Origin: Octopus sinensis
Taxonomy: Eukaryota
Length of the DNA stretch: 18,852 bases
Direction of reading: 5' to 3'
NCBI RefSeq assembly: GCF_006345805.1
Contig: NW_021824429.1
Location: 1-18,852, forward strand
This document shows, piece after piece, positions 1 to 18,852 of the stretch. The translations under genes were made by a program, and so were the position numbers. Each line of letters opens with the position of its first letter. Positions within the stretch are counted from its first letter, which is position 1. Below the pieces are notes generated by a model that did no database searches, had not been told where the DNA came from, and saw only the letters and a program-made list of their open reading frames with translations.

Positions 1-161
1 TTCACGAGTTGGATTTAATTTGTCTGGTTTTATTGCAAAAGAAACAACTTTCCAGCTAAAATCAATTCTCGTCAACTTTCCCTGGCAGTAGGCCGATGAG
101 TCCTTTTGGCATGATACAGTTGAAAAAGAGGATCTTCTATATTCCTGGATCAATCATTTAG

Positions 162-404
162 GATGGCGTTATCTGGTCCACTAAGTCAGTTGGATCTCGA
201 AACGCCCAGGAGGAACCTAATACCCACACCAAAAGAACCATTAGAACCTCTACCAATGGGACATCCTCGTACCAGGACGATGCACTTTCCATAGAACCTA
301 ACCATCCCAGACAAAATTCCCCAGTTCATACAAATGCTGCAAACCGATTAGCCGCCAGATACGGTTTTGTGTGGACTCGTAGGAAGATCACCAAACAAGG
401 ATGA
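162..404 (+). other. Unassigned coding-like fragment (80 codons, no in-frame ATG)
   Basis: Stop-free frame DGVIWSTKS...AANRLAARYGFVWTRRKITKQG* in a visibly GC-richer stretch. No family confidently recognised, and the strand is uncertain. Confidence 0.2.
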
Positions 405-1875
405 GGTCGCTTTCAAAGTTCAACATAATCACGGATTAATTAGTTTCGTTTTAACGTATCTTAAGACATAATAAATAGAATACAAAATTCCTTTCACCCA
501 TTTAATTAGCAAAAAGAGTTGGATTGTATTTATTAGAAGATTTACAGAGAAGATGGGAGAAAGATTTGTGGAGTCTCCCCTTTTTAAATATAAAAGTGCG
601 ATCTACATTATTATTTTATGAAATATAAAATAATATGTCACAGGCTGGATAATGCCCTGGGTTGGATAATACCCCCTTAAAATTTTGTTTAAAATCAAAC
701 GAAAATAACCTGATAATTAATTAAAAATAACTTGATAATGGAATTAATTCAATTTATTCAATTTTTTATCCATTTTTTGATTGAAAGAATTTTTCAAAGA
801 GTCGGCAAAAACCGGCATCACCAATTTTTCCAAATCAATAACGTATTTTATTATAATTATACAATTTTTTATTATTATTATAAAGCACTTTCGGAAAAGT
901 CATAAGTTAATTAAGCTTTCCTTGTGCCACCATTGAAATTCTCCCGGTCATGCGTCTCCAGGCTCTCCGGTCAGTTGCGATCGTCCTGAGTGAGTCGAGA
1001 TCATCGCCATTTTTCAGTTTTTTATTAATTCCAGCTAGATCTTCATTTAGCGTGGTAGCCAGAGTGACCCTGGGTCTTCCACGGAAGTCTCCTTTGGAAT
1101 GGGCAAAGTAGTTTTCCATCGCGATATTCGGCGGAGTGAGGCTGTCAAGTCTTAATATGTGTCCAAAGAGTCGCCATCTGGACTCCAGGATGTCCATAGA
1201 GATCGGTCTCGAATTGCATCTTTTGTATAGGGTGGAATTTGCTATTTTCCTTGAGAATTGCATGTTATCACTCTTCTCAGTTGGTTCCGATGAAATCGGT
1301 CCAAATTGTTCATATCGGTCTTACTGATTCCCCACGTCGATCCATTGTACATTAGGACTGGGACAACAAATGTGTTGTATATTTTAAGTTTTGTCTTTGA
1401 ATTTAGCTTCTTTAGGCGCCAGATGTTCATAAACTTATTGTATGTGGCAATTGATAGTATTTTTCTGTGCATAATGTCTTCAGAGTCCCCTAAGAGAGAT
1501 CCGACTTTTTTTTGTCTTCTCCAGGGCTCATCATGAGTTCGTTCAGATCGAATAAATTTCGTATGTTCAGTTTTGTTGTGGTTGATTGTTAGAAACCATT
1601 TGGAAAAAATATCTGGTAATGTTTCGATAATACAGTCCGACCCCAAAATGGGGCAGACCCCAGGGGTGGGGCACCCTCGGATTTTGGGGCACCCCCGCAA
1701 TTTGGGGCACTTTATTCCAAAAGTACATTTTGGCAGAAAAAAAATAAAAATCGATAAAAAATTATGGAATTTTTGGGGCACCATAAAATCATTTATAAGG
1801 AATTAAAAATAAAATAAAATTTAATAAATTAATTATTTTTGTTTTATTTTCAATTATATTTTTATTGTTGTGGTT

Positions 1876-3821
1876 ATGGATTACGAAACTAAATTGAAGA
1901 TTGCTAAAGAAATTTTGAAGAAAAATTTATCTGAGAGGCAACTAATGAAAAAGTACAACACAAGTAAAGGAACAATATCAAGAATAAAACGAAATATTGT
2001 ACCTTTCTTGCAACACGGCAATACTATTTCTGAGGAATATGACACATTTAAAGCCGATAAAGATAAATTTGATGATCAAGTCTTTGAAATATTTCAAAGA
2101 CTACGCGTAGATAAAATTCCGATTTCAGGCCCTATTTTGAAAAAAATTGCCTTAGTTACAGCTTCAAAAATTGGATTTACTTCTTTTAAAGCTTCCAATG
2201 GGTGGCTTGATAGATTTAAATTGCGGCATGAACTTCAATTCAAGTCAATATGTGGTGAAAAAGCTTCATGTGATTTATTATGTGAAAATTATTTTGAAAA
2301 ATATGACCAGAAAGTATTAAAATATGGACCTGAGAATATATTTAATTGTGATGAAACTGCGCTTTTTATAAAAAGAACTCCTCAAAAATCATTTGTTGAA
2401 CAAGGCGAACCGTGTTTGGTTATAAAACAAGGAAAGAAAGACTCACTGTTCTTCTATGCTGCAGTTTAATCGGGAAAAAACTGGTACTTATGTCGAAGTG
2501 GTCGCAGTTTTTTTAGGCCTTTTAAAAAATCTAATAATTTTTGAGGTGGAATATATTATATTTTATTTAAGTCGCTCTATCAATAATTTAAAATATTATT
2601 AATTTTTTACTAATTTATTTTCTAATTTTTTTAATATTATGGCGAGCATGTACCTAATATTGATATAAACTGGCACTATAGGTCACATGGAAAATTCTGT
2701 TGTGGACTTATGCAACATCAAATTCCGACAGCTCCCAATAAGTAAGGAGGATGCTGTGCATTTTCTGCAAAATGTGGATATCCTTTCAAAATCACGTATA
2801 TGTCCGAAGGGACATCAAATGCAAGAATAAAGCTCAAAGAGGAGCTGTAAGACATCATCTGGGATCTTATTTCGCAGGTTTTTTTAGTTAGTTATTTTTT
2901 CAGAATTTATGTGGCGAAAACAAATACAGAACTATAAGGAATGTTTTGCACAGATTGTAAAAGACATAAATTCCTTCTACAGTCCTGGAATTTGGATGCC
3001 GCGTACTAAAAATGACTAAATTGGTTAAATAAATTTTTAAATAATTTTAATAACCATTTAAATTATTGATAGAGGGTTATAAATTAAATAATCTATTTTT
3101 CACTAAAAAAATTAATTAATTTTAATTATCTTCTAAAAAAACTGCGACCACTTCGACAAAAGTACCAAAAACTTAATCCATTGATTATTGGAAAATATAA
3201 AAAACCTCGTGTCTAAAAAATTTTGATGTTCAAGATTTTGGGTTATTGTATTCATCTTCTCAAAATGCATGGATGACTGGAAAGACTTTTATGAGTTGGC
3301 TTACACTTATAAATGAATCGTTTTGCAAAAACAACAGAAAAATATTATTAATACTTGACAATGCGGGATGCCATAAAACTGCCGAATGTTCGAACATCGA
3401 ATTTTTATTTTTGCCGAAAAATACAACGCCCTATTTACAACCTTTGGATATGGGAATAATCAAGATTTTTAAAGATTATTATTCCTCTTTCTTAATGGAA
3501 TTTTTATGTTTTCAAGATTTCGAAAACGATTTTACACATTCTATTGGTAAATTAAATTTGCGTCAGGTTATGATGCTAATTTCAAAAGGATGGGAGAAAA
3601 TAGATGCTAAAAGTATTGTTAATTGTTGGAAGAAAATCGACAGGAACCGTGATTCTTATGCAACAAAAAACTGTCTAACAGATGAACATTTAGATCAAGT
3701 TGTTAACGAAACAATTGATGGAGAATGCGAAGACATGAACAATAATGTTTATGATACATATTCAGAAACCGAAAATAGTGAAAATGTCGTAGCAAAAACA
3801 AAAGATCTGCTTAACAATTAG
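1876..3821 (+). pseudogene. Tigger transposase (HTH_psq + CENP-B HTH + DDE_1), interrupted by Merlin
   Basis: FKASNGWLDRFKLRH, IFNCDETALF, LLILDNAGCH and LQPLDMGII motifs. Removing 2483-3173 restores CCSLIGKKLNPLIIGKYKKPR. Two 1-nt frameshifts (~2434, ~3210). Confidence 0.9.
2483..3166 (+). mobile_element. Merlin (IS1016-like) deletion derivative
   Basis: TIR GGTACTT(A/T)TGTCGAAGTGGTCGCAGTTTTTTTAG. TSD AAAAACT is 7 bp perfect, or 8 bp allowing one A-run indel. N-terminal AVHFLQ..ICPKGHQM is fused to C-terminal HHLGSYFA|EFMWR with a 26-nt intron (2878-2903). Confidence 0.85.
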
Positions 3822-4266
3822 AAGAAAAAATTTCTAATGTTGCACCAAGTATGCTCCGAGATTTTTTTGATTTTCGGCTGAAATTGACGAACAATATCAG
3901 ACAAAACTCTACAAATAAAAAGAAAATAACTGAATATTTTAGTAAAAATGTTTTTTGATGTTTATTAATGGTTTAATTTTTAAAAAAATAACAAACCCCT
4001 GTTTTTGGGGCACCCCCGCATTTTGGGGCACTTGGTGCCCCATTTGGGGGTCGGACTGTAAATCGAAGGGTTTCAGCATCATCAGATACGAAGTCGACAT
4101 CATCAGCATATATTATTTCGTTGTATTTAGTGTTGTCCACAAGAGGCCGAAAGTCTCTGAGGCCGAATTTAATTTAATTATTCAATTACAATTTTTTAGG
4201 TCTACCATTTAAAAACAAATATTAAAAATTCATGAATTTTTATTATATAAAAATTTTTTATAAGAG

Positions 4267-6132
4267 TCATATTTTTTTTATACGACTTTTGTGTACATAT
4301 TTGGATGATTCGTCATTAAGATCTTTAAGTACGCATTTGTCTTTATCAACCTCCGATATTTCATATATAGTGGAATCAATCTGATCGTATAGGGCAGAGG
4401 TTTCCAAATGGGGAGGCGCGCCTCCCTAGGGAGGCGTTGACTCGTGTCAAGGGAGGCGCGAAAAGTATTTCAGAAACATTTTTTAGAAAATTATATCTAT
4501 GTAAAAAACGTGACTATATTCCGATAATAAGAGTTATTAATTTAAAAATTATATTTTTTCAAAAATTTATTTAATTTATTAGACAATTAAATAATTTTAA
4601 CACATGGATAAATTCTTGAGTGGTTGCAAAAGAAAATTCACGAATAATAAAGATTTTGACGATGGTTCAAAAAATCAAAATGATTGGAATATAATCAATA
4701 CCACTCCAAAGACAAGAAAATACTTTCCATCTTACTTATTGTTAGGATTCACACAAAATAAAAGCATTTATGAAAAAATTGGTATTATGGAAATCAAATA
4801 TACAAAAAAATATCTATGACATGTTTCCACTTTTAAACACCTTTTGCGCCATAGTGAACATTGAAGCAAACAAAGACATATTTGCTGAACATTTGGATTG
4901 TTTGTTGAAGCATTTTGCTCACTATTTTAAAGATCTCGACTGTAAAATGTTCGAATGGATACAGAATCCATTTATTGATGAAGAAGATAATCAATTTGCA
5001 TTGACAACTTTTGAAAAGAAAAATTGATAGAATTGTCATGCGATACATTATTGAAACAAAAATTGAGAGAGAACCGCTAATTTCTTTTTGGTTGAATGTA
5101 AGAACGGAATATGAAATTTTGTCGAATAAAGCAATGAAAGTTTTGTTGCCATTTGCTACTTCATATTTATGCGAAACTGGATTTTCTGCACTAGCTGCAA
5201 TTAAATCTAAATATCGAACTCGTTTAGTAGTGACTAATGAGCTAAGAGTAGCACTCTCTGCGATGACACCAAGATTTGAAAAACTTTGCGCCAAGATGGA
5301 AAAAAAATTATCTCATTAACTTTTTGTTTTAAAAAATTTTTTTGATAAAAATAATAATTATGTATTATATTATGGAATATAAAGGGAGGCGCAAGATTGT
5401 ACTTTTTTTCTCTAAGGGAGGCGCGTAAAAAAAAGCTTGGAAACCTCTGGTATAGGGGGTATTTTCGGTTATTTGGATTCGCATCAATATCATGTCTCAG
5501 TAGGACATTATCTCCTACGGCTACATCTTCATCAAATTTCCATTTCCGCCTCCTTTTCATTTTTTCTCCAGAATTTCTTGATAGAAGTCTTTATAGCTTC
5601 CAAAAGACCCATTTGAGGCACTAGTTGAGCTAATCCACCTTTTGATCGATTGATTGAATCTAAAGATAAATTTACAAATAACTTGTCTTTCTACTTGACC
5701 CTGAATCCATGGTGCTTTAGGGCGTCCACTTATGTGTATGATTTTCAGATCATTACACATTGTTTCCATACATTTGTTCTTAAATTCTTTCCCATTATCC
5801 GTCTGTAGAATAAATAAGGGACCATTTCCTTTCTCAATATCGAAACCAACTTATCTCTTCCAAATGTGTCCTCATATGTTCAATCTATAATAATTATGTA
5901 ACGATCACCTCGATAGTTTTTAGTTTAAGTTCCTTTTCTTCTTTTGGAAAAAAGCGTAACCTTTGGTTTTTGTATTTTATGTATATTATCCCTTCCTCCT
6001 CGAAAATTAACTGTTCTGCTAATTTTCTGTATCTTTTCTTCAGATTTCTGAAATCGGTCCATATAAAAAAACATCTATTTGAATATTTTTGATTACTTAA
6101 AGTTCATCTTTGGTAAGCTTGAGTAAAACCAT
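4267..6132 (-). pseudogene. Ginger A integrase/transposase remnant
   Basis: ATG at 6132. EH..HFGRD Zn-binding half, then an internal deletion, then ILQTDNGKEF..GRPKAPWIQGQVER|FNQSIKRW. C-terminal VGDNVLLRHDID..RKYPLY|DQIDST.. is rejoined across the hAT insertion. Micro-introns at 5885-5908 and 5660-5686 (the latter with a mutated donor). Confidence 0.85.
4395..5449 (+). mobile_element. hAT (Buster/Charlie-type) deletion derivative
   Basis: TIR CAGAGGTTTCCAA. Perfect 8-bp TSD GTATAGGG (4387-4394, 5450-5457). Subterminal GGGAGGCGC repeats. C-terminal dimerisation motif LLPFATSYLCETGFSAL..KSKYRTRL in ORF 5011-5319. Confidence 0.93.
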
Positions 6133-6502
6133 TTCTGAAATATAGATTTGATCGATTATACTTATTATTTTTTCAAATTGGAAAACTTAGATAACCAAAA
6201 CAAATTTTCACGCTAGATTAATTTGAAAAAAACTTTGATAAATTACTAAAATAATTAAGAAAATCAAAAAATCTAATCAAAATTAATTTGAAAAAATATT
6301 TATTTTTTTTAAATAACGTTGAGGGGGCATTATCCAACCCAGGGCATTATCCAGCCGGTGACATAATTTTCTGACATAAAAGAAATTGATAAAATTCTCT
6401 GAAGTTTAGGGATTGAGTAACCTACTTTCCCAATCGATGTCGAGTTTAATTTGTAAATCTCAATTTTTTATTTAATAAATGTGATGGGATTTTTTTAATT
6501 AT

Positions 6503-8173
6503 TGTCGTAAGTTATAATGTCTAGGCCCGTTCTAAGTGTCCGGAGTGATAAATCGGATTTATCACTCCAAATCATCTAAATTCTTTGTTTAAGATCTGAA
6601 ATTCTTAATGATTACTTTTGTTAATTCAATAATTTTTTAAATTATTAAAATTTGAAAAAAGTAACTCAGTTAACAAGAACGCGGAAATTAAACAAAGAAA
6701 TTTTCATCAATCAGGTGATTGAGCGTCATAGTAACGAACATAAAATGTAAGATTACTCTATGCGAATTTTTTTTCACAATAACCTCAATTAATTCAATTC
6801 AAATCCTTTAGTTTTATAACTATTTGTTGATTGCTAAAAAGACTATAAAATAGAGATATTGACTAAATCGAAAACCGAAACTAAACATAAAATAGATAAT
6901 AAAATTTACAAACATTGTCCCAAACAGTCTCGTAATATAAATTCAGTTTTCAACAGAGTCTGTATTTAACCGCTACATATGATTCTGTGCAAACTCTTCC
7001 GGTCCTTATTTATGTGACGAAAAGGGTTTAGACGAGATGACCTTCTTCCAGTATAGAAGCAACGTCTCCTATGTCGAATAAAACAAAGCAAAAGTTCACT
7101 TATATTATGAAACAATTTTTAAAAAACATTACAAATTGATTGAATATAAAATGAAAATGTAATTTTTAAAGTTAATTTTTTTTAATTTAATCATTGACTT
7201 TGGAATTGTCTTCCTTTCACCAGATGTGCAATTCTCAACGAGAACGGAATGCAGAGAAACTTCTTCCACTACTAGAAATTGTTCCTTGCTAAAAAAACTA
7301 GTGAGTGGATATTTTCTTGTTTTTATATTTTTATCGAAATCAATTTTAATTGTAACATTATCTCCAATTGTGATATCTTTTTTTCGAAAATTTTTATTTG
7401 CGTCTTCTGTAACTTTTCTTTTATACTTTTAATTATGAGTTTTTACTTCTAAGGATAATTCCGTTTCTTCCGATTCTGAGTTAATCTCTTCTTCTTCGCC
7501 TCCACATGGCAAAATATTAAAACCCGTTATTCCGTAAAATAGACTGGGTAAATAAAAAGAGACTAACCAAAATAATGACTTTCCAGTTCCGCGATGACAA
7601 GTTATGTTGTATTTATACACCACCTTCTGTAGAATTTCTCTCCACCTTATATATTCTGTTGCGAACAAAGTCTTCCCCCACCAACGTTTGAGAGTTTGGT
7701 TATATCTTTCTATTTGTCCTTGAGATTGTGGGTGCCTTGGTCTTCCATATATCGGAGTTATTTTCCAATCATCAAAAAGTTTTGAAACTTCTTTGTTGCG
7801 GAATTCCTTTCCATTGTCCGAATGAAAATAAATTGGGAACCGACAGTCTGGAATAAACTCTCAATTGCATTATAGATGCTTTGTGATGTTTTATTCTCTA
7901 ACGCGAACTTTAAAATATAGACATTTTATCCCCAATTCGACCCATTTCCTATCTAATTCAACAAAAATAAAATTTCAATTTTTTTGCCTACCAGAAAAAC
8001 ATGCGGGTACATTTTACCAATAATTTCATCCGTATCCCCGTATAGGACGTTATTTAACCAAAATTAGGCGACACAAATAAAATTTATTCCCAAAATCATA
8101 ATGATTTGGAGTGATAAATCCGATTTATCACTCCGGACACTTAGAACTGGCCCGGACGCTATAACTTACGACA
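6503..8173 (-). mobile_element. Ginger/TDD-type DNA transposon B (internally deleted)
   Basis: 73-bp TIRs (6503-6575, 8101-8173; 5 mismatches) starting TGTCGTAAG. Perfect 5-bp TSD ATTAT. Integrase core FHSDNGKEFRN..GRPRHPQSQGQIERYNQTLK and C-terminal IGDNVTIKID..RKYPL. 24-nt intron at 7544-7567. Confidence 0.92.
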
Positions 8174-8190
8174 ATTATTAACTTATTAAA

Positions 8191-8779
8191 TGCACCCCAC
8201 ACCCCTGCAAATGTGGAAAGAGGATTGGTCCATTGGGAAGGCACCCACTTTCTTGCACTCGTAGCGCCGGTCGTTTTCCCCGACATTCCGCCGCCAATGA
8301 CATCATCAAAAGGGCCATGGACGCTGCCGGATTCCACTCTCAACTCGAACCAGCTGGTCTCGATAGAGGGGATGGCAAACGCCCAGACGGCGTAACCATC
8401 TACCCGTACACGAGAGGGAAAGCACTTGTTTGGGATTTTACCTGCCCTGACACGTTTGGACCTTCTTCATTCGGAAGTTCGGCATCCTTTCCTGGCTCTG
8501 CTGCAAAACGTTCTGAAGAGTTGAAGAAAAAGAAATACTCTTTCCTGGCAGACAGATATCTTTTCCAGCCAATCGCTGTGGAGACTTCTGGAGTCTTTGG
8601 AGCAGAGAGTTTTTCGTTCATTCGAAGATTGGGTGGTCTAATCACCAAAAAAACAGGTGATCCGCGGGAGACGTCGTGGCTCTTTCAGAGGATTTCGTGT
8701 GCAATTGTCCGCGGAAATTCACACGCTATCCTAGGGTCATACTAATTAATTCAATCGATTTTTTTACTAAAAAAAAAAA
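8191..8779 (+). mobile_element. 5'-truncated CRE-clade non-LTR retrotransposon (RLE domain + poly-A)
   Basis: CKCG..H..SC....RH zinc knuckle and restriction-like endonuclease motif DGKRPDG..WDFTCPDT..PIAVETSG. Stop at 8745, A11 tail at 8769-8779. TSD CTTATTAAA at 8182-8190 and 8780-8788 (up to 11 bp if tail A's are counted). Confidence 0.88.
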
Positions 8780-8924
8780 CTTATTAAAGAATTTTATTTT
8801 TAAAATGAAATTTAGAACTTAAACAGTTTAATAAATTAATCTAAAAATTACTTTCTGAAAAATATCAAAACCTTCTCATTTGGAGTGGTACAATTGGTTC
8901 TTCTGCATTTCCAATAAAATTATA

Positions 8925-9657
8925 TGTCACAGTCGGTTAATGAAACACGCCGTTAATGAACCGCCAACATCAAATTGATAAAATCCAATAAAATTATGTC
9001 GATAAAACCAACATACCGTATAAATTTGCGCTAACGTAAGCTTGTTCGACAATTTATTAAATTTAGGGCTATCCATTAATTTTAATATTGCAAATTTATT
9101 ATTTTTTTGAAATTTATTATAAATTTAATTTAATTATTCAATTTTAAATAATCTCGAATGATAAAGCGTTCCATTTTGTCATTCTCAATATTCACTGCAT
9201 TTTCCATTCCCATAATAGATAGAAAGGGACTTTCTTCGTCGTCGAGTGCACTATATTGTTGTAGTCGAAAACAATATCGTTAATGCATGCAAAGTATCTT
9301 CCAAAAAATCCATTTGAGGCGCTAGTAGATGAGATCCATCGCTTTATACTTTGGTTAAATCTAATTAAGAAAATAATTAAAATACAACCTCTCCACTTGA
9401 CCTTGTATCTATAAATCAATCTTCTCAGCTTTGAAAATAAGCGGTCCCGTCCAAAGTGAATAAGATTATGTTCCGTTTAAATTATATTGAAATAAATTTT
9501 AACTTCAACAAATTTGAGCTTCAGCTCCATTTCAACCTCGCAAAAAACGCAATTTTAGACCAGTTCTATTGTAGAATACAACTCCATTTTCGAATGTAAC
9601 AGATTCAGAGAGTTTCCTGATTCTTAAATAATTTATTGAATTTGGCGAATTCGCCAT
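8925..9657 (-). mobile_element. Ginger/TDD-type element D fragment (one TIR only)
   Basis: Terminus TGTCACAGTCGGTTAATGAAACACGCCGTTAATGAACC at 8925. Transposase runs from ATG ~9657 (EHNLIHFGRDRL), through an internal deletion, to IQGQVER|FNQSIKRWISSTSASNG, nearly identical in protein to element A. Introns at 9477-9503 (acceptor mutated) and 9361-9388. No second TIR found. Confidence 0.8.
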
Positions 9658-9751
9658 TTTATGTCAATACAGTGGAAGTTGTGACTGTTGCTTGAATATA
9701 ACATATATTTTTAATAACAATTAAGCCTAATAAATATCACTAACGACCATG

Positions 9752-10039
9752 TCAAATTCTGTCATAGACAAATACTGAGTATTGGATAAACATATTTCGA
9801 TTGGAATTTGAAATGCTTATTTTAGAGCAGGTGTAAAATAAAAGAAATGAAAGAGAATTGGGATTTTGACATTCTGATGGAATACCATGACAGAAAATCG
9901 CTTCTTTTGTAATAATTGTGACCGGTTCATAATCAGATACGGTTGAATACGAGCCGTTAAAAAATCGATAATTAATATACCGATTCAAAAGGCCAATTAA
10001 TATAAAGGCAAAGACAAGACAAGTTTTATTTCCCAACAA
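9752..10039 (-). pseudogene. Membrane-protein gene fragment, possibly mucolipin (TRPML) N-terminal part
   Basis: Hydrophobic segment then FILIGLLNR..YRFFNGSYST..ITKEAIFCH, which resembles remembered MCOLN1 LILFGLSNQ..FRHLFLLGYSD..YTRE..AIFH. The resemblance is weak and the upstream exon does not join cleanly. Confidence 0.35.
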
Positions 10040-10269
10040 ACCTATAAATTAATGTTAGGGAGAAAGCCAAGAGCAGAACAAGAGGCTAATTAATGTGGGT
10101 TTGATTTCATTGTATAGGGTCATTTTATGAGACACCACATGTCTCTTCTTCGCATATACCCAAATGAAAAAATTACATCATAATTTCCATAAGTGACGTA
10201 AAAAATCTACTATCTTTCTGACTTTAACGTCATAAGCATCTTCGATTTTTGAATTTAAGTCCAATCCAA

Positions 10270-11925
10270 ATGCCAATTTAATAGCAAATCTTCTGGTCTT
10301 TTCCAACTTTTTCACAAAAATGCTATTAAGTTTAGTTCATGTACAGAGTTGTACTGCTGATAGACATGGGGCATTGTACAATTCCCAGAACAGAGATACC
10401 TGAATAGATTTAAAAAACTAACCAAAAAAGAATCCCAAATGCAAATATGTCTACTCTCCTGTCGTATTTTCCACTGAGTAATTCAGGGGACATGTGGATA
10501 GGGGTCCCGACGACGGTCCCCGATATCAATGAGACAGGTTTACAGAATCCCATGTCAGTCAATTTTGCATGAAAATTACAATCCAGCAAAAAACTACCAA
10601 AAAAATGTCCAACCATAATATTGCTTAGTTTGATGTCTCTGTGGATGTGTCCCTGTCCGTGGATGAGGCGGATTCCCTCGACCACCTCCAGGGCGATCCC
10701 CATTCTGTGGTGGAATGGCCCAATGAGGGACCTCAGTTGTAGTGGCATTTGTTTTTTAAGGGCATGGCATAAATCCATGTCGTATTTCTTATAAAATGTG
10801 AATTGTAGTCGACATGTCATCCTCGTGCATGACTGTGCCCAACACGAACACCACACGGTCATTTTTGGGTAGAATTCTGTCAGAGGAGTTAGGGAGATTA
10901 ACCTTGCGTAGTTAGAGAGACGTACCCAGAGATACGTCAGAAATGTGTCGATCGTCTGGGGGAACTAAGGTTTTTACAGCACAGGACTCGAATTCTCCAT
11001 TTCTCACAAAAATAGACAACTCCATATTGTCCTCGGCCAAGTTCCCGTGATAGACAACCCCTGCCTGTTTAATAGTGTGCTAATAGTCCACCTCGGATAG
11101 CCTGATCTCGCGTGGAAGTGCTTTTTAGGTGGAGGAGGCTGAGTTTAGGGACTAAAAATTTGTTGATTTTTTTTCAAAATTTGGAATGTTTTTCAGCCTG
11201 TCCGCGATATTGTGATTCCATTTATTGTATTAGAAGATAGGCAACACTCGTAAAACAGCGTAGACAACTATGACTAAGACAAAGATGGACACCGGTCTTG
11301 AATTGCTGATAACTCGTGGGCTAATTTGGCCAGTCTTAGACTCAACAGTGTTCGACGTAGTATTTAATCACACGTTTGATTTTTTGTGGATGTGTCACAT
11401 CTGTCCAATGACACATCGAGACTATCGAATTATCCTCCCAACAGGACTCCACACTTCGGTTGGTTGGAAACTCAGTAATGTTAAAACTTAAAAAAACAAA
11501 AATAGAACAAACTTGTAGGGAGATAAGACTTCGTAAAACTTGTCCCTGATGTTCTGATGATCTGTTTAGTTTATATATTCGTAACTTACATGGTCTAGTA
11601 ATATTGCTAGGAAAACACAATAAACAAAACTCGTCGTTATTATATTTGTACATTTATACTATTTCTTGGTCCTTGCATAAATAAAGATCAAATCCAACCA
11701 CATATGCCAGAAAATCGTCTTGTTTCAATACACATATTACGATTATAAATTCTCCCGGATCAAGGGTAGACTGGTTTCCAGAAAAATGCTAAAAAAACAA
11801 AACACGTGAATATTTCCCACAATAAACGATTTTATGATATTTTTCTTGTTTGGATGAAATGGGAAAAGTCATAAATTTGGTGTCCTTGTGGAGGTTTAGT
11901 TCCCTGTCCATCACTGCTGACAAAA
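10270..11925 (-). pseudogene. DSTYK: Dual serine/threonine and tyrosine protein kinase (RIPK5) pseudogene, 5' part missing
   Basis: ELGRGQYGVVY, CAVKTLVPPDD, IALEVVEGIR..HRDIKL, DMGFCKP..SGTVVGTPIHMSPEL..GKYD..VDIFAFGILFW|YLCSG match DSTYK. Upstream MESQYRGQAEK..VPKL matches the pre-kinase region. Micro-introns at 11065-11091, 10877-10902, 10705-10731 and 10400-10422. In-frame stops at 11222-11224 and 11174-11176; frameshifts at ~11309, ~10997 and ~10791; C-lobe end degenerate. Confidence 0.9.
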
Positions 11926-12020
11926 TATCTATTTAACACTCCAATAATGGAAAGCACAAATAATGGAAAGCTGATTTAGGACGACTTTGATGTGATTCAA
12001 TATCTATTTAACACTCCAAT
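11924..12020. repeat. Local direct repeats at the DSTYK/COG2 junction
   Basis: AATATCTATTTAACACTCCAAT at 11924-11945 and 11999-12020; AATAATGGAAAGC at 11943-11955 and 11959-11971. Confidence 0.9.
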
Positions 12021-13680
12021 CAACCAAAAATTATGTCAAAAACTAGAGCAGCAGCTAGAATCATTAAATTCACAAATTTTTCAAATAACGACAAACAATT
12101 TTCCTTCAATATTATCAATAAAAACAAATTTGGTCAAACAATTTCAAATTAATAAAAATAGTCACAATTGAAGGAAAAAACGGGGCACTTAAACGACCAA
12201 TTTACAAGTATCAAGGAAACTGCACAAGTATATTAATGCTATAATCAGACTATGTTCGATGATGTGGAAATATCCTTCGGAAATATACATTATTGAAACA
12301 ACAACATCAAAAATTGGCTACCATTCGTGTATTGGCTGTTCTAATCGGCAGGTGTTCATCAGAGACTGTCGAGTGGTCGAAAGTGATCTTCAAAGACTGG
12401 GTTCATATTTTTGTCGACTCGAACAAACATTTGTATATTCGAGTGAGAGAATGTCTCTTATCCAATTGTCTGGGTTGTTCCTCCTTTGAACTGCTGCCTT
12501 CCTCTCCTGCTGGCCAGACTCTGCCATTTCTGTCAAATACCGACAAGTTTGTACAAATTTCATATTCGAAGCAACTTACTGTTCACCAGGCACAGTTTGA
12601 GAGGAATATTCGATCTCTGCTCAGTCGCACAGACTTGGGCGGAGTTCTACGCCTGGCCCGCTTGACGGGGAAACAGTCCGTCATGGAGGATGAACTGAGG
12701 ACCTTAACGATTGAAAGACTGTTTGTGGATCATCGTGGAGACTTGTTTGGTCACGTTTTTGGAGTATTGAAGTCCATTTTTGTGCCATTCGAACAAGTCG
12801 TGGAATCTTATGACAGATTTGATTTTCCTGCCAATTCACTCCTGTCTGCTTTTGTGGAGTATTTGTCGTTTCTTAAAACGAGTTTCTCTTTAGAGAAATA
12901 ATATGTCGCTTTTATACAATCAAACGCCTTACTCATCTACAGGTAAATTTGTGCTTTTATTTTTCCGTAGGTGTTAGTCCGTTTCGAAGATATCGAGAGA
13001 TCCCAGGCTACAACACTATTGAGAAAATACTTTAACAGAGACAGACGGTGAAGAAAAGCTGGAAAATGTGCATAATTCTGGTTTTTATAAAAGGATGAAT
13101 AAAAAGATGGGAGTGCATCGATAGAAATATGAATTCAACATTGGAGATAATTTATAATAACTTAAAGGTTCGTATTCAGAAGGACTGTGAAACTAATCCT
13201 TCACTATGTCTGCAAAAATTTAAGCATCTCTACGGAGATTTGTCACTATTGTTAGAAAATTTTTCAACAATTTTGTCAATGTTAATGATAGTGAGGGAAT
13301 AGTGAGAGATGTGCATTTCAAATTCTAAATAAAACCGTAGGTAACCAACTAAATTTTATTTTTAAGAAAACATGTCTTAATAATATTTTTACAATATGTG
13401 TGGTTGAGAGCTATACTTTTGTGAATATAAAAGTCGCCTTCATTTTTAGCTGTTTTTTAATACGTTAAATGTCTTTTGAGATAAAACTACGTAGTGTTGG
13501 TCGTAGTGACGACTATCCTGTTGCAGATATGGTATAGAATGAAGTTCTTGATTTTCTTCGGTCAGTCTGATGCTGTTTTAAATGTCTTCCGTGAAGGATT
13601 TTAGATAAAATTCAAATGCCGCTCAATTGGATATCAGAATTTTTCTATTTAAAATATATTTTTGTAGCGGCTATCTATAG
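11947..13680 (+). pseudogene. COG2: Conserved oligomeric Golgi complex subunit 2 (damaged gene or error-laden copy)
   Basis: DDFDV..LE..IKTNL, GHLNDQFTSIK, LPFL, VLR..GK....E, FDFPANSLLSAFVEYL, VRFE...SQA, LYGDL and DKIQM.L segments align in order with remembered human COG2 (EDFDV..LSTNL, GQLREEVLSLR, YDFLVNSVW, SQASV, DKIRLQL). Introns at 12133-12161, 12228-12248, 12943-12970 and, putatively, 12865-12893. Frameshift at ~12290; the 3' third is not resolvable into an open frame. Confidence 0.75.
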
Positions 13681-13769
13681 ATGGCGGATATGAATAATTT
13701 TACTGTACTTTTACATATTCATTTTAAAACCTTTTTCAAATACATGATAAGAAATCTTCAGCAGTTTTT

Positions 13770-16700
13770 TGGGTGTCGACTTATCGTGAAACAAAAAGTC
13801 TACATTGTCGGCATGTTTCTTTAGTTGTTGACTCAGTCTTTACTAGTTTTCTCAGATTTCTTAGAGCAGTATTAAATTCGAATCCACCCGTTCCTCAGGA
13901 TACTCACAAATATACTCAAATGACCACCAGCACTAAAAAGTCCTCAGTCCACATCACGTTTACCAAATTAACATATCTCAACAGTTTTCCCAACGGAAAC
14001 GACTTTTGTGAGTCTAATAAATCAACCGACACCCAATCATACACTCCCTCGTCCTTTCCTCCAAGCACACGGCCGTCGTGGAGGCAATCCATAGCCTTCC
14101 TCGGTGGGGTGTATACACGACTGATTCCGCGAACCTAATCAATAAGAAATCGCAGTAAAATATACTTTATGATCCTCCCAATTAGCAGGGAGGCCACTGG
14201 CTGGTCGACGGGGAGACACATCCTGGGGTCCCCCTTCCCGCCAAGTCCATTCAAATCACCCTCATTTCCACCCACTTTTCCAGAAGGGGGACTCACACTG
14301 TCGTTCACATTGGTGGACTGGCCTATTTTGGTAGCCTCTGATGTGAGATAAGCCATCTGCTCCAGTCGGACTTGATCAGTCACATCTTCGACTGAATTGG
14401 GTTGGAGTGAGACGTGGAATTTGTCTGATTTTAGACATTGGTCAATTCGGTCCTTCAACTGGTCAATTTCCCTCCTCTCCGACGAATCAGTCCAGTGATT
14501 GACAGAGAAGTAGTCCATTTGGTCGTCGATAACACCAGTTCGTAGTTGACTGCACACTAACATTACTTATTTTGTCGCGTCCCATGGTGGTTACGCATCC
14601 CATGCTGGCTACATGTCACCTGTCAATCAATCATTTTTACGAGGTCATTGGCTGTCAGATGTCATAATTAATGTGGTTTAATCATTCGTTACTCGTGTGG
14701 GCATATTTAATATTTTTAGCGTTATTATTAGGGCAATTTTTTTCAGGCACTTAAAATTTATTTTTAGGACCTTAAAAATAGGCATTTTAGGACTTTATTT
14801 TTAATTTTTAGGACTTTATTCTACATTTTTAGGCACATTTTAATAAGGTATTAAATCAAAAAGTCGTAAAAAATTATTTGTTATAGTAAGGTATTAAATA
14901 ATTTTTGACATTTTCCGCATTGAAACCTCTATCTTTAGTAATTAATTTTTTAAGCATAGAAAATGCTCTTTCAACGGTTGATGATGTACACTGACATTTT
15001 CTTATTAGTCCATATTCTTCAGGGGAGATATTACTTTTCTCCATTTCTATAATTGATTCTATGTCATTTTTGTGTAATCTTTTTTGTATGTATTCATTTA
15101 TTTCTGCATTATCAGACGGAAATTTTAACAAACAAAGATCTGAATGTGCATCATTTATTGTATAACTTGTGGATTCCATTTTTTTCAATATTTGATTAAG
15201 TATCTGATAATTTTCATTTATTTCCATTAGACTTTTTCTTAAGGTTGGCGATTCAATTGCTTGTTTTACTTTTTTAACTAATATTCCGTCGTCTTTGAAA
15301 TTCTCCACAATTTCAGCAATTGATACAAAATTATTTGCATAATAGTATGCTGCTTGCAGCCAACTACCCCATCTAGTTATGATGACGTCGGGCGGATAAC
15401 CAATTGTAGAAAACATTTTTTTTCTAGTTTTGTTTTTCACTATTGATGTCTTTATAGTCGCAATAAGATTATCAACGTCCGAATAATACGCCTTTACTCT
15501 GAGACAGCAATTATGTAACAAATGTGCAACACATGTTACATGGAACATCCTAGGATAAAGCATTTTCAATGTTTTTCCGGCTAAAAATAATTCAACAAAC
15601 TACCCAAAATCATATACGGGGCTGCATCAGAAAGAAAAAGAAGAAAATTATTGCGTATAATCTCGAATTTTTTAATCTCTTCATCGATAATCTGAAGAAT
15701 TGTGTTAGCAGTTACAGATTCATATAAAGGTTCACACGAAATTAAATAGGTCTTCTCTGGATAAGCGATATTCCCAATGAGAACAACTACAAACTTCTGT
15801 CCATTTACGTCACCCTCGTCAACAACCATAAAAATCTTTTGAGATCTAAAAATTAATCATTTGTTAACCTTAGATCACTTTTATACTTGGATAATTTTTG
15901 TTCACTGATTGCAGGAATACAATTGCGACAGGCTGACTGGGAAGGAAGCGAAATATTCAATTTTTCAAACAATCCCTTTAAGCTTGGATTATTGAGCTTA
16001 TGAAGAGGAATGTTTGCTTCAGAAAAGGCTTTGGCAACTTCCATCGGCATACTCTGAAAGTCTTCCGTTTCGGTTTGACCGTTGAATAGGGAATCTAAGG
16101 ATTGTTGGAATCCTTCATTGTTATCTAAAAAAAATAATTTTAAATTACTCAAAAGCTTTAGATGTTTTGTAGATTGTCTATGCTGATCAATATAATATTT
16201 TTTGATGCATTGACGTAGATCATACATATTTTACAATATAGACTGCCTTTAATCACTGTGAATTCTTTTACGTAAGTTTCATAGGCTTTTAGAGCTTTAG
16301 ACTTTATTGTAGAACGTACACGTGGCATTTGAACACAAAAAAGTAATTTATAGCGTGCCTAATTTGTTATTTTTAAAATATTTTTTTGTAACATTTAAAA
16401 ATAATTTATTTTAAAAATTTTTAAGACCTTAAAAAAATTTTTAGGACCTTAAAAAAATTTTTAGGACCTTAAAAAAATTTTTTAGGACCTTAACAATTTT
16501 TTAAGCATTTAAGGCATTTATAACTCGTTGTAGATAAATCTATTTTAATTAAATTATAGCTTAAATTAATTATTTAAATAAATAGACCTTTTGGTGCAAA
16601 AAGGCATTTTAGGCAAAAAATTGCCCTAGTTATTATTCAATTTTCAACATGTCCTCTTTAAATGATCCCCTGTATATGTAATAATAGTTTTGTAAAAATA

Positions 16701-18635
16701 TCTCAGAATATCATACCTTAGTCAATATTTTAAATGGCCAACCTGTACAGACATCTTCAAGACAAATAAAATATAATTAACTAAAAAATCCACTAAATTT
16801 ATTGTCATTGATGACTGCTTATACCTCAAAGACGAAAGATTTCAAAAGCACAAACTAGTTATTTGCATGGATAATGAGAGTGAGATGCAAACTATTGCAG
16901 ATTCTATTCACCGGAATAGCCATTCTGGAATTCGTAAACTGCAACAGGAATGTTTACACTCCTATTTTACAATAAAGCGTAAAATTATCGAACGAGTCGT
17001 CAAAGAGTGCTCAATATGCAAGTTTTCCATTCCACTTAAAGTATAAAATAAAAACTTATATAGCAGGTTTCAGATTCTAAGTACCATGTGATTGCCAAAA
17101 GACCAAATGAACGATTCCAAGCAGACCTTATAGACGTTAAAAAATTTAACGATTCGAACGATGGCTACAAATGGATATTTACCGTCATTGATGTTTACAG
17201 TAAGTATGCCATTTGTAAAGGAGTTAAAAATAAATCTGCAATAAGTATATTATGTTTTATATTGGAATTTAGATATTTGTGAGGCTTTCGAAGAATTTGT
17301 TCAGAAATCGGCTTTTGCGAGATTCTACAAACAGATAATGGAACTGAGTTTAGGAATAAATATCTCGATTCTTTTTGCACGAAAAACAAAATCCAACATA
17401 TTTACGGAAGACCAAATCATCCTCAATCACAAGTAATGACACAATATTTATCTGTTTCAGGGTATCGTGGAAAGATTTAATCAAACTTTAACACGAAATC
17501 TTTCAAAGCTGATGAGTGAAGAATCAACTAAAAACTGGATCCAATTATTAACGAAGCACTTTTACATATAACACGACTATTCATTCTTCTATAAATGAAA
17601 CACCATTTAAAAAACTAAGAGGAGTTTCTGGTATACACCGTCATTCATGATGATAAGTTTTTTTAATTTTTTAATTTCAAAGAAAGTGAGTGTTCGGATG
17701 ATTTTTATCATGTATCATCAGAGGATATGGATGCAGAAAATATTTTAGATGTTTCAGGTAAATTTTGAATAACATATGCTAGACAACTTGGATGCTAGTG
17801 ATTTTATATTGAATTTTTCTCCACCTAATTTAAATTCACCATATTTTAAACGCATGAATAAAAAAAATGAATGTTCATTAATCGAAATACGATTTTTCAA
17901 TTAGGAGCGGAGTATTTTTAGTGAATAATTGTTAGGTTAGAGTTCTAAAGGATTTTGGGACAAATCCTTCCCTAAGGCTAAACCGATTTGAATCCCCATA
18001 TGGAGAACCTGCTGAAGTTGTTCAAATTTTGTCAAACAATCGACTAGAGGTCTATTTTATTATTATTTTATTTAACAGATTAAAACAAGTTCAGGGAAGT
18101 CTAAAATAGTTAATATGAATCAAGTTAAAAAAACGTAGACGCTTTATTTTAATAAATTTTTATTGTTGAAACGATTATTGATTAGAAATCAATGCAATTA
18201 AATTAATTATTAAATTTGACAGTCACCATGACAGGCATTATTATTTATTGACAGGTGACATGTAACCACCATGGGATGGGTAGCTCGTGTGGACGCGACA
18301 TATTTACCACTTTATGTCAAAATCTAACAATCTGTTTTTATTATCCAAGGCCTGTTGTAGGGTGGGGTCGGGCTGGTGGGACACATCATCCGCGTAATGA
18401 CGACAGTTCTTACTCCTGACCTACCAATGAGGATGAGGACGACCATATCCCCACAGAACAAGCAGGGACCGGCTCCTTTTTGAAGGCAGACCACTCGCCC
18501 ACAGGAAAGACAGTTGTTGACCAATCCGTGAATGGTCGACTGGCAGGCACACTCCACTCGCCTTCCTGGCACTACATCTCCACTCCCCAAACCCTTTGAT
18601 TTGTCGAAAATAACGTCCCTGACTTCCTTGCCCCA
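13770..18635 (-). CDS. TRIP4: Activating signal cointegrator 1 (C2HC5 zinc finger + ASCH domain); 5' end missing or outside the window
   Basis: CACQSTIHGLVNNCLSCGRVVC..GAGPCLFCG, KNRLLDFDIK|CQLRTGVIDDQMDYF, CLPVDQPVASLL and YTPHRGRLWIA motifs. The frame is open across introns 18421-18443 (23 nt), 14550-18307 (TE-expanded), 14135-14165 (31 nt) and 14014-14042 (29 nt). The 3' end below ~13920 and overall functionality are uncertain. Confidence 0.85.
14874..16328 (-). CDS. hAT transposase, 461 aa if one A-run deletion is corrected
   Basis: zf-BED-like CKIC..H...KH; VVDE, LSDAAPYM, CVAHLLH, TRWGSW and VERAFS motifs. Three GT-AG introns (16125-16148, 15846-15868, 15581-15603) join the ORFs in frame. 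The only lesion seen is a 1-nt frameshift at ~16200. Confidence 0.85.
16421..16501. repeat. Subterminal tandem repeat of the hAT element, 4 x ~20 bp (TTAGGACCTTAAAAAAATTT)
   Basis: Directly visible head-to-tail units. The same core motif occurs at the other end (~14762-14835). Confidence 0.9.
16650..18150 (+). pseudogene. Ginger C integrase (H2C2 + rve DDE + C-terminal domain)
   Basis: H..SHSG..C..C zinc finger; ERFQADLID, ILQTDNGTEF and GRPNHPQSQ|GIVERFNQTL; C-terminal FESPYGEPAEV. Introns at 17041-17065, 17245-17272 and 17433-17460. Several stops and frameshifts. End coordinate approximate. Confidence 0.87.
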
Positions 18636-18852
18636 TAAAGACCTTCGGGAAGTTATGAGATAATAAACGGCTCAAGGGGTCTAATACAGGGACAAATATC
18701 ATGGGAACAATCTATCCCCCTGCAGGATTCCTCTCTCGATGCGTATATCTCGAATGTACTTGCCATTTAGCCTTAGTTTTACTCTCCATCTGGTAACCAT
18801 CGACTCAACAAACTTGACAATCCATCCAGGTAGACAAGACTTTTCCAAAATC
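18630..18852 (-). mobile_element. Reverse transcriptase fragment of an R4/Dong-like non-LTR retrotransposon (runs off the window)
   Basis: WIVKFVESMVTRWRVKL..IRIERGILQGDRLFP / MIFVPVLDPLSRLL corresponds to the RT domain 4 motif RGI.QGD.LSP..F...LDPLS. One frameshift. It stops before YxDD and abuts TRIP4. Confidence 0.8.

Follow-up and report, generated by a model that had tools for sequence, protein, structure and literature searches.

Introner elements are transposons that create new introns, and ciliates remove internal eliminated sequences from their DNA. Dicyemids and myxobolid myxozoans are the only animal lineages known in which introns are mostly shorter than 30 nt, with splice signals of the form GTa...AG (PMC13644364). 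The recognition of animal introns of less than 30 nt is an open question, and we describe here a natural test case in a stretch of 18,852 nt from contig NW_021824429.1 of the Octopus sinensis assembly GCF_006345805.1 (positions 1 to 18,852, forward strand), referred to below as the window. The window carries the TRIP4/ASC-1 gene of a micro-intron animal, in which an ancient phase-2 intron of 25 nt almost certainly took up a Ginger-type transposon and later, between the left end and the integrase gene of that transposon, a hAT element. The intron's own donor and acceptor are untouched but are now separated by 3.7 kb, and a decoy acceptor lies about as far from the donor as is usual for such introns. 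The locus, one transposon in one intron, bears on whether intron recognition needs a short distance or just splice sites. The best overall explanation, that this structure arose as described and that the intron is still spliced, has in our estimate a probability of about 0.5.

The locus resembles introner elements in that a DNA transposon forms the body of an intron in a coding gene, and it differs from them in that the intron, 25 nt long, frame-breaking and bounded by GT-AG, came first, the element supplying no splice site. An intronic transposon and a hAT element nested in another element are both ordinary in eukaryotes; the unusual part is the conserved 25-nt intron in a micro-intron animal. 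As with ordinary intronic transposons, the landing site is non-coding, the host splice sites are untouched, the intron has grown and nested insertions have accumulated, but the recipient was only 25 nt long, in a setting with a median intron of ~22-27 nt and signals reduced to GTa...AG (PMC13644364), and tolerance of a 150-fold expansion is not to be assumed in a micro-intron genome. A literature search on transposon insertions in micro-intron genomes found nothing specific. We infer that the host of the TRIP4 locus is a dicyemid or a myxobolid myxozoan; its exons of 49% GC, its transposons of 30% GC and its repeat density seem to fit Dicyema japonicum (36.7% GC, 49% repeats and many LINE copies; PMC6736024) better than Henneguya (29% GC, few transposons).

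TRIP4 and its 25-nt intron

The host gene was identified as TRIP4 by Pfam, protein-collection and Protein Data Bank matches, which agree with one another and with the name given in an earlier first-pass annotation of the window. The exons matched Pfam zf-C2HC5 (PF06221; E = 1.5e-8, 34.9 bits against a cut-off of 25.8), the best relatives in the protein collection were all ASC-1/TRIP4 proteins (33% identity, 97% query coverage, E = 4e-33), and human ASC-1 (8alz) was matched in three collinear stretches (E = 1.4e-25). A profile of 498 positions, built from 28 TRIP4 relatives, was searched against the six-frame translation of the window and matched the minus strand, in order, at profile positions 112-163, 188-209, 212-281, 350-369, 377-401, 405-440 and 439-455. 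A gene model in which five GT-AG introns are removed (41 nt, the expanded intron, 31, 29 and 31 nt) yielded 292 codons with no internal stop, and all 50 invariant columns of an eight-sequence alignment (A1) are kept in it, including HRGRLWI. All eight zinc ligands (C27, C29, H34, C40, C43, C48, C56 and C59) are invariant in the same alignment. One loop of the protein is shortened by a deletion of 10 residues. The middle region, the third domain of TRIP4 with its RT.VIDD..DYF motif, matched the profile (212-281; E = 5e-7) and residues 263-319 of 8alz, and with Pfam PF23134 it scored 18.1 bits, below the cut-off of 27.7. The part of the ASCH domain that is present corresponds to residues 1-48 of the ASCH structure 2e5o (profile 350-455), and over this first half it differs hardly at all from the human protein (YTPHRGRLWIA); the Pfam ASCH model had no match to the TRIP4 protein even at E = 1.

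Two alternative readings of the ASCH region were rejected. A frameshift between ECMIGC and VDLLD, suggested by the human sequence, was abandoned, the alignment and the profile setting FPLGKLLRYVNL..EYICEYPEERVDS against YPTGCLIGCVN..EEY..YP.ERVDSP, and translation of 13963-13933 as coding sequence (VNVMWTEDF) would duplicate the EEY motif and hit a stop. The frame change was read as an intron because the 29-nt GT-AG intron shares its phase with an aphid intron; a one-base shift in place of that intron (14014-14042) is the less likely alternative. The other introns of TRIP4 measure 29-41 nt, and not the 21-31 nt that the first-pass annotation had given for introns of this region. A 27-nt probe from a TRIP4 exon found no match among metagenome contigs. 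Exact look-ups of the proteins of two reading frames of the window had no entry, and the protein searches gave no match from the source organism itself.

The junctions of the expanded intron were rebuilt by script from the directly read sequence of the window. Taking out the element together with one TATTT copy leaves GTAAATAAGTAATGTTAGTGTGCAG (25 nt, 32% GC), and the reconstructed empty site reads ...AAGTG/GTAAATAAGTAATGTTAGTGTGCAG/TCAACT..., that is ...AAGTGGTAAATAAGTAATGTTAGTGTGCAGTCAAC... (slashes mark intron borders or breaks in the frame here and below). Read without splicing, the frame runs through FDIKW into a stop, while removal of the 25 nt gives LLDFDIK-C-QLRTGVIDD, and the spliced junction aligns without gaps with TRIP4/ASC-1 proteins (alignment A1). 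The restored intron (GTA...CAG) is of the GT-AG type, falls within 20-30 nt and has a 'GTa' donor, the published marks of a micro-intron (PMC13644364). The reconstruction reproduced, base for base, what the first-pass annotation had proposed, namely that the element at 14573-18300 can be removed with one TATTT copy to leave 25 nt, that splicing these out produces FDIK-C-QLRTGVIDD in the TRIP4 register, and that the intron, now 3,758 nt (18307-14550), has been inflated 150-fold.

To place the intron in time, the genomic TRIP4 locus of an aphid (Rhopalosiphum maidis, L008) was fetched and its exons were mapped. An intron of 123 nt interrupts the aphid gene in LLEFDRT-S(AG/T)-AKRTTVIDD, and the expanded intron of the window, in LLDFDIK-C(TG/T)-QLRTGVIDD, falls at the same residue and in the same phase. 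The intron at 14165-14135 likewise matches an aphid intron in NIK-S(AG/C)-HEGRTW, in phase 2 and eight residues before TPHRGRLW, and the 29-nt candidate at 14042-14014 shares phase 1 with an aphid intron that lies in a variable loop, at a distance of two residues. By a rough estimate, the chance of two of the five introns matching the aphid exactly is ~5e-4. The same codon and phase in aphid TRIP4 show that the 25-nt intron is ancient and older than the insertion. The conserved position, together with the 25-nt non-coding remainder at the empty site, ruled out that an introner-like transposon created the intron.

Two nested transposons inside the intron

The outer element has TGTCGCGTCC as its terminus on both sides, and this 10-mer occurs at only those two places in the window (0.19 expected by chance). 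Imperfect inverted repeats of ~100 bp (77% identity; BLAST E = 8e-13) form its ends, and it is flanked by a duplication of TATTT; the chance of such a 5-bp flank match at this base composition is ~0.0016. The insert has 30% GC against 49% in the TRIP4 exons. Two copies of an 18-nt unit lie in the left end (14576-14612) and are likely transposase-binding sites. An 18-nt probe from the end of the element had seven matches, none extending past the seed, as expected of chance matches.

Ginger elements have been defined by inverted ends of 40-300 bp and TGTNR...YNACA termini (PMC2836005; Bao, Kapitonov and Jurka 2010). We placed the outer element under this definition because its ends are inverted and not direct, its termini read TGTCG, its target-site duplication is short and it has no reverse transcriptase. 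It shares with Ginger elements a Gypsy-type integrase made up of an rve core and an H2C2 zinc finger, a transposase gene interrupted by introns, inverted ends of ~100 bp, TGTCG termini that fit TGTNR, a short target duplication and the lack of a reverse transcriptase (PMC2836005). Its inverted ends and missing reverse transcriptase also ruled out a remnant of an LTR (long terminal repeat) retrotransposon. Among the subgroups, TDD-4 and TDD-5 (Ginger2/TDD) resemble it in their AT-rich target and 5-bp duplication (PMC2836005), whereas the duplication is a 4-bp CCGG/CCGT in Ginger1 and 4 bp long in metazoan Ginger2, against the 5-bp TATTT seen here (PMC2836005). Ginger2 is said to be without a GPY/F module, yet an integrase relative (P0244) has SH3_Tf2-1, a Ginger1 or Gypsy trait. 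The listed Ginger families measure 2.7-6.7 kb, and the outer element is shorter, at 1.8 kb (PMC2836005). With traits so mixed, its Ginger subgroup does not appear assignable.

The integrase is the sole gene of the outer element. It matched Pfam rve (E = 1.2e-15), rve_3 (E = 6.6e-9) and Integrase_H2C2 (E = 5e-5), and it is most closely related to integrase-only proteins of ~260-430 residues. Among the named relatives, the best (P0241; 48% identity) is annotated as 'Gag-Pol polyprotein' and comes from the microsporidian Dictyocoela muelleri, another intracellular parasite; the family may have spread horizontally from parasite to parasite, or the likeness may simply mirror which genomes have been sequenced. 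The SH3_Tf2-1 (GPY/F-type) domain of P0244 is C-terminal, and the C-terminus of the copy in the window is degenerate. At least three frameshifts and one in-frame stop cannot be accounted for by micro-introns; this copy is dead and would now be a passenger.

The inner element is of the hAT type, with an 8-bp target-site duplication (GTTATTAT; chance of a match ~3e-5), short inverted ends, subterminal repeats and relatives that carry the hAT dimerisation domain and DUF659. Its insertion point lies 156 bp in from the left end of the outer element, ahead of the start of the integrase gene. Its ends start with TAGGG, in agreement with the YARNG pattern of hAT elements. Arrays of a 20-21-nt subterminal repeat (TTTTTAGGACCTTAAAAA) lie at both ends (14735-14833 and 16413-16505) and are likely transposase-binding sites. 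The spliced coding sequence of 1,107 nt runs from ATG to TAA with no internal stop and is intact. The transposase is 49-50% identical to P0122 and P0123, and relatives at 46-52% identity carry PF05699 (hAT dimerisation domain) or PF04937 (DUF659); the protein itself scored 22.1 bits with DUF659, below the cut-off of 34.7, and had no PF05699 match in Pfam. The copy differs from other hAT elements in being compact (1.9 kb, a 368-aa frame), in its two micro-introns, in a protein that stays below Pfam thresholds and in an N-terminal zinc-finger region that could not be made out. The first-pass annotation had called the outer element a Ginger carrying a hAT; the inverted ends, integrase domains and TGTNR termini of the one (criteria of PMC2836005), and the 8-bp duplication, 14-bp inverted ends and hAT relatives of the other, bear it out. 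Both elements appear to be new members of known superfamilies.

The nesting indicates that the Ginger-type element entered the intron first and that the hAT element then entered the Ginger-type element; of the two, the hAT element is younger and better preserved, and it may still be mobile. Both transposase genes carry GT-AG micro-introns of their own, of 23-41 nt. The locus therefore shows resident transposons with host-style micro-introns, suggesting that the two elements have adapted to the unusual way in which the host splices and have probably lived for long in this or a similar lineage. The Ginger-type element entered the AT-rich TATTT just after the donor site, leaving the donor GTAAATA with the upstream exon and 18 nt (...AAGTAATGTTAGTGTGCAG, with the acceptor and a putative branch site) with the downstream exon, so that neither insertion affected the intron's own signals. 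The locus shows that an AT-preferring element can enter an AT-rich intron of an otherwise GC-rich gene. Such a target preference alone would steer the element there. The suggestion in the first-pass annotation that micro-introns serve as transposon shelters is speculative, one case being too few to support it.

The window is dense in repeats, and repeat copies might in principle have been misjoined into the TRIP4 locus during assembly. We consider this barely credible, as in each of the two nested elements the inverted ends match and the flanking duplication is perfect, at the length specific to the family (5 bp and 8 bp), and as the empty site rebuilds to a functional-looking intron at a conserved position, which a misjoin would not yield.

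Splicing of the expanded intron and the state of TRIP4

The spliceosome would remove the whole 3,758 nt as one intron through the original donor and acceptor, and the gene would still be expressed; we put this part of the explanation at just about an even chance or slightly below. TRIP4 looks constrained, judging from its intact collinear core, its invariant residues and its exon GC of 49%. At least four disabling lesions were found in ~1 kb of the integrase gene and none in 876 nt of TRIP4. If the integrase lesions arose in place, ~3.5 lesions would be expected in an unconstrained TRIP4 (Poisson probability of none ~0.03). Time has probably passed since the first insertion, and the recent date considered in the first-pass annotation is not borne out by an integrase gene with at least three frameshifts and a stop. 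Longer introns in micro-intron genomes also count for continued splicing: one third of Dicyema introns exceed 30 bp (PMC6543705), introns average 38 bp in D. japonicum (PMC6736024) and have a median of 27 bp in Dicyema sp. (PMC6543705), and myxobolid introns of more than 100 bp occur without special signals (PMC13644364). If a reduced spliceosome does remove kb-scale, transposon-filled introns efficiently, it works over very short and very long distances.

A number of observations weigh against continued splicing. The first 80 nt from the donor hold a single AG, a decoy (18284) that lies inside the element's end at 24 nt, a typical micro-intron length, and its use would lead to C-YPSHGGYMSPVNK and, after 14 codons, to a stop. 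Of the 42 GTA sites on the sense strand of the insert, 26 are followed at 20-35 nt by an AG, and decoy GT sites precede the true acceptor by 45 (GTAACC), 63 and 70 nt. The transposase gene on the sense strand of the intron could add termination signals. The decoy AG, the decoy GT donors and this gene suggest that splicing is probably less efficient than before. The integrase lesions may also pre-date the insertion, a defective copy having been mobilised in trans, in which case the argument from elapsed time is void. Nothing closer than 33% identity was found in a collection of 5.8 billion proteins, and no transcript-derived copy of this gene was among the matches.

The ends of the gene count on the same side. 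The TRIP4 stop (TAA, 13862-13860) aligns with the conserved cysteine of 'FICE' when the sequence is read through, and the last ~40 residues of ASCH (..NPIELP.KFPI.GKHKIYKLD; profile 456-498), present in 28 of 28 relatives, are missing from all frames of the window. A six-frame profile search and a read-through translation with stops as X found nothing of the C-terminus beyond LL-stop-E, and an apparent remnant at ~13800-13720 (TFCFTISRHPKNC and RFLIMYLKKVLK on either side of a stop) found no backing in the profile. A search beside the stop codon for inverted repeats, as a mark of another insertion, turned up nothing convincing. At the other end, the zinc-finger frame is open from 18671, with a stop at 18674-18672; no in-frame ATG lies between this stop and the zinc finger, and the N-terminal domain (TRI4_N; profile 1-111) was not found in the window. 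Directly upstream of the first visible exon is a reverse-transcriptase-like fragment (GILQGD..LFPMIFVPVLDPLSRLL), whose best Protein Data Bank matches were R2 and LINE-1 ORF2, both weak (E = 0.3-1.3), and which had no match in Pfam. The claim in the first-pass annotation that the TRIP4 exons are free of lesions consequently stands only for the aligned core (profile 112-455 of 498); outside it are the early TAA, the missing end of ASCH and the lack of an ATG and an N-terminus.

A rival reading is a null allele or decaying pseudogene, in which correct splicing is abolished by the insertion, either by itself or in combination with the truncated C-terminus and a disrupted 5' end. Intron definition over ~20-40 nt would pair the donor with the decoy AG at 24 nt and so lead to the premature stop, or the transcript would end inside the element. 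Inactivation is a plausible prospect, to which we give somewhat less than an even chance. It draws on the shortened ASCH domain with its TAA at the conserved cysteine and no remnant further on, on the absence of an ATG and an N-terminal domain beside a reverse-transcriptase-like fragment, on the transposon-rich surroundings, on the intact hAT gene, which fits recent activity at this site, on the frequent loss of genes in reduced parasites (PMC6736024), and on the lack of a transcript-derived protein among the database matches. The intact exons would then reflect recent inactivation, or a second copy or allele supplying the function. Inactivation is harder to reconcile with 292 lesion-free codons in which every invariant residue has been kept while the outer element decayed, and with the near-human first half of ASCH. 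The decoy may also be a poor one, since GTCGCGTCC, at positions 8-17 between the donor and the decoy AG, contains no A and may lack a usable branch point. The missing ends of the gene, in turn, may lie outside the window or be lineage-specific. The window ends only ~230 nt upstream of the first visible exon, and the relatives P0001, P0025 and P0112 have just ~20-30 residues ahead of the zinc finger. N-terminal exons may lie past 18852, in which case the reverse-transcriptase-like fragment would sit inside a second enlarged intron; aphid TRIP4 has a 1.7-kb intron at the corresponding place.

Removal at the DNA level was considered as well. Dicyemid somatic cells undergo genome rearrangement and chromatin elimination and contain extrachromosomal circles, according to Noto et al. 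2003 as cited in PMC6543705. If the window comes from the germline of a dicyemid, somatic chromatin elimination could excise the nested transposon, or a larger block, and restore the 25-nt intron before expression. In principle, a cut-and-paste element whose ends and duplications are intact can be excised, and nothing in the window contradicts this account. We regard it as highly improbable, as the dicyemid source itself is only presumed, as transposases do not normally excise an insert precisely with one duplication copy, and as no transposon link to dicyemid elimination has been reported, the described circular contigs having held only mitochondrial protein domains (PMC6543705). If true, such removal would be an animal counterpart of the internal eliminated sequences of ciliates. 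The two have in common a micro-intron genome and transposon-derived inserts in genes that are in principle removable before expression; they differ in the animal source and in the element family. Splicing of the whole expanded intron through its original sites remains our leading reading by a small margin, since this and a dead allele, the two alternatives that the first-pass annotation had offered, are nearly equal in likelihood.

Feature coordinates and the rest of the window

The features of the TRIP4 locus are listed in Table 1.

Table 1. Positions, strands and defining details of the TRIP4 exons and introns, the two nested transposons and the adjoining retrotransposon fragment.
Feature	Position	Strand	Details
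TRIP4 exon, C2HC5 zinc finger	18414-18625	-	profile 112-163, E = 5e-21; 5' boundary uncertain
GT-AG intron, phase 0	18373-18413	-	41 nt; needed to pass from zinc-finger frame to PDPTLQQALDNKNRLLDFDIK frame; 32/29-nt alternatives with same acceptor
TRIP4 exon, PDPTLQQALDNKNRLLDFDIK and first two bases (TG) of next codon	18308-18372	-	profile 188-209
Expanded intron, phase 2	14550-18307	-	3,758 nt; donor GTAAATA (18307-18301); acceptor ...GTGTGCAG ending at 14550
TRIP4 exon, QLRTGVIDDQMDYF to CLPVDQPVASLLIGRII	14166-14549	-	profile 212-281 and 350-369; 8alz match
GT-AG intron, phase 2	14135-14165	-	31 nt; position and phase as in aphid
TRIP4 exon, FAESVVYTPHRGRLWIASTTAVCLEERTRE	14043-14134	-	profile 377-401, E = 1e-6
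Probable GT-AG intron, phase 1	14014-14042	-	29 nt; frame change needed; alternative is a one-base frameshift
TRIP4 exon, (Y)SQKSFPLGKLLRYVNL	13964-14013	-	alignment, profile
GT-AG intron	13933-13963	-	31 nt; needed to join VNL to CWWSFEYICEYPEERVDS
Last visible TRIP4 exon	13860-13932	-	ends ...EYPEERVDSNLILL, then TAA (13862-13860)
Ginger-type transposon encoding integrase	14573-18300	+	3,728 bp; 1,820 bp without nested insert; ends TGTCG...CGACA
Inverted ends of outer element	left 14573-14672; right 18202-18300		
Target-site duplication TATTT of outer element	left copy 14568-14572; right copy 18301-18305		
Decayed integrase gene	16649-18138	+	tblastn with relatives P0241-P0243, then manual frame analysis
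Micro-introns of integrase gene	17041-17063, 17245-17272, 17433-17460, 17912-17935, 18050-18078	+	five, 23-29 nt, host-style
Integrase frameshift	~16775-16780		IKYN/LTKK; no room for intron
Integrase frameshift	~17300-17312		EEFVQK/IGFCEILQTDNG; conserved GPCEILQ block in other frame; no room for intron
Integrase frameshift	~17550-17560		NWIQLL/..FTYN; no room for intron
Integrase in-frame stop	~17878-17880		TAA; VH-stop-SKYD
Nested hAT element	14729-16628	-	1,900 bp; perfect 14-bp inverted ends TAGGGCAATTTTTT
Target-site duplication GTTATTAT of hAT element	14721-14728 and 16629-16636		8 bp
hAT transposase gene	14874-16044	-	368 aa; same strand as TRIP4
Micro-introns of hAT transposase gene	15886-15846, 15603-15581	-	41 nt, 23 nt
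Reverse-transcriptase-like fragment of non-LTR retrotransposon	18640-18852	-	frameshifted; adjoins zinc-finger exon upstream; runs off window

The window gave no hits in scans with Rfam and for tRNAs. The first-pass annotation had described the neighbouring genes as broken, which is doubtful for a protein-kinase gene at ~10100-11150 (minus strand) that reads through several micro-introns and has LGRGQYGVVY, CAVKTL, HRDIKLSN, DMG and SPE motifs (Pkinase, E = 2e-17). An open frame of 170 codons at 8233-8745 (plus strand; 47% GC) had no Pfam match and may be a host exon or an unclassified mobile element.

Several further mobile elements were found. A pogo/Tigger-type transposase at 1870-2469 and 3246-3821 (plus strand) has its HTH_Tnp_Tc5 and DDE_1 frames ~780 nt apart, which may reflect a nested insertion or decay. 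At 4604-5319 (plus strand) lies a second, unrelated hAT-like C-terminus (Dimer_Tnp_hAT, E = 7e-5). Two overlapping frames at 907-1784 (minus strand) are similar to the C-terminal region of a protein of non-LTR retrotransposons (DUF6451, E = 2e-4) and add to the LINE-type content. Three more integrase fragments, at 5629-5811, 7570-7860 and 9213-9362 (minus strand), are 32-49% identical to the integrase of the Ginger-type element, and the peptide RFNQSIKRWISSTSASNG occurs twice, in the reading frames at 5557-5769 and 9192-9419, suggesting another integrase-bearing family with at least two copies.

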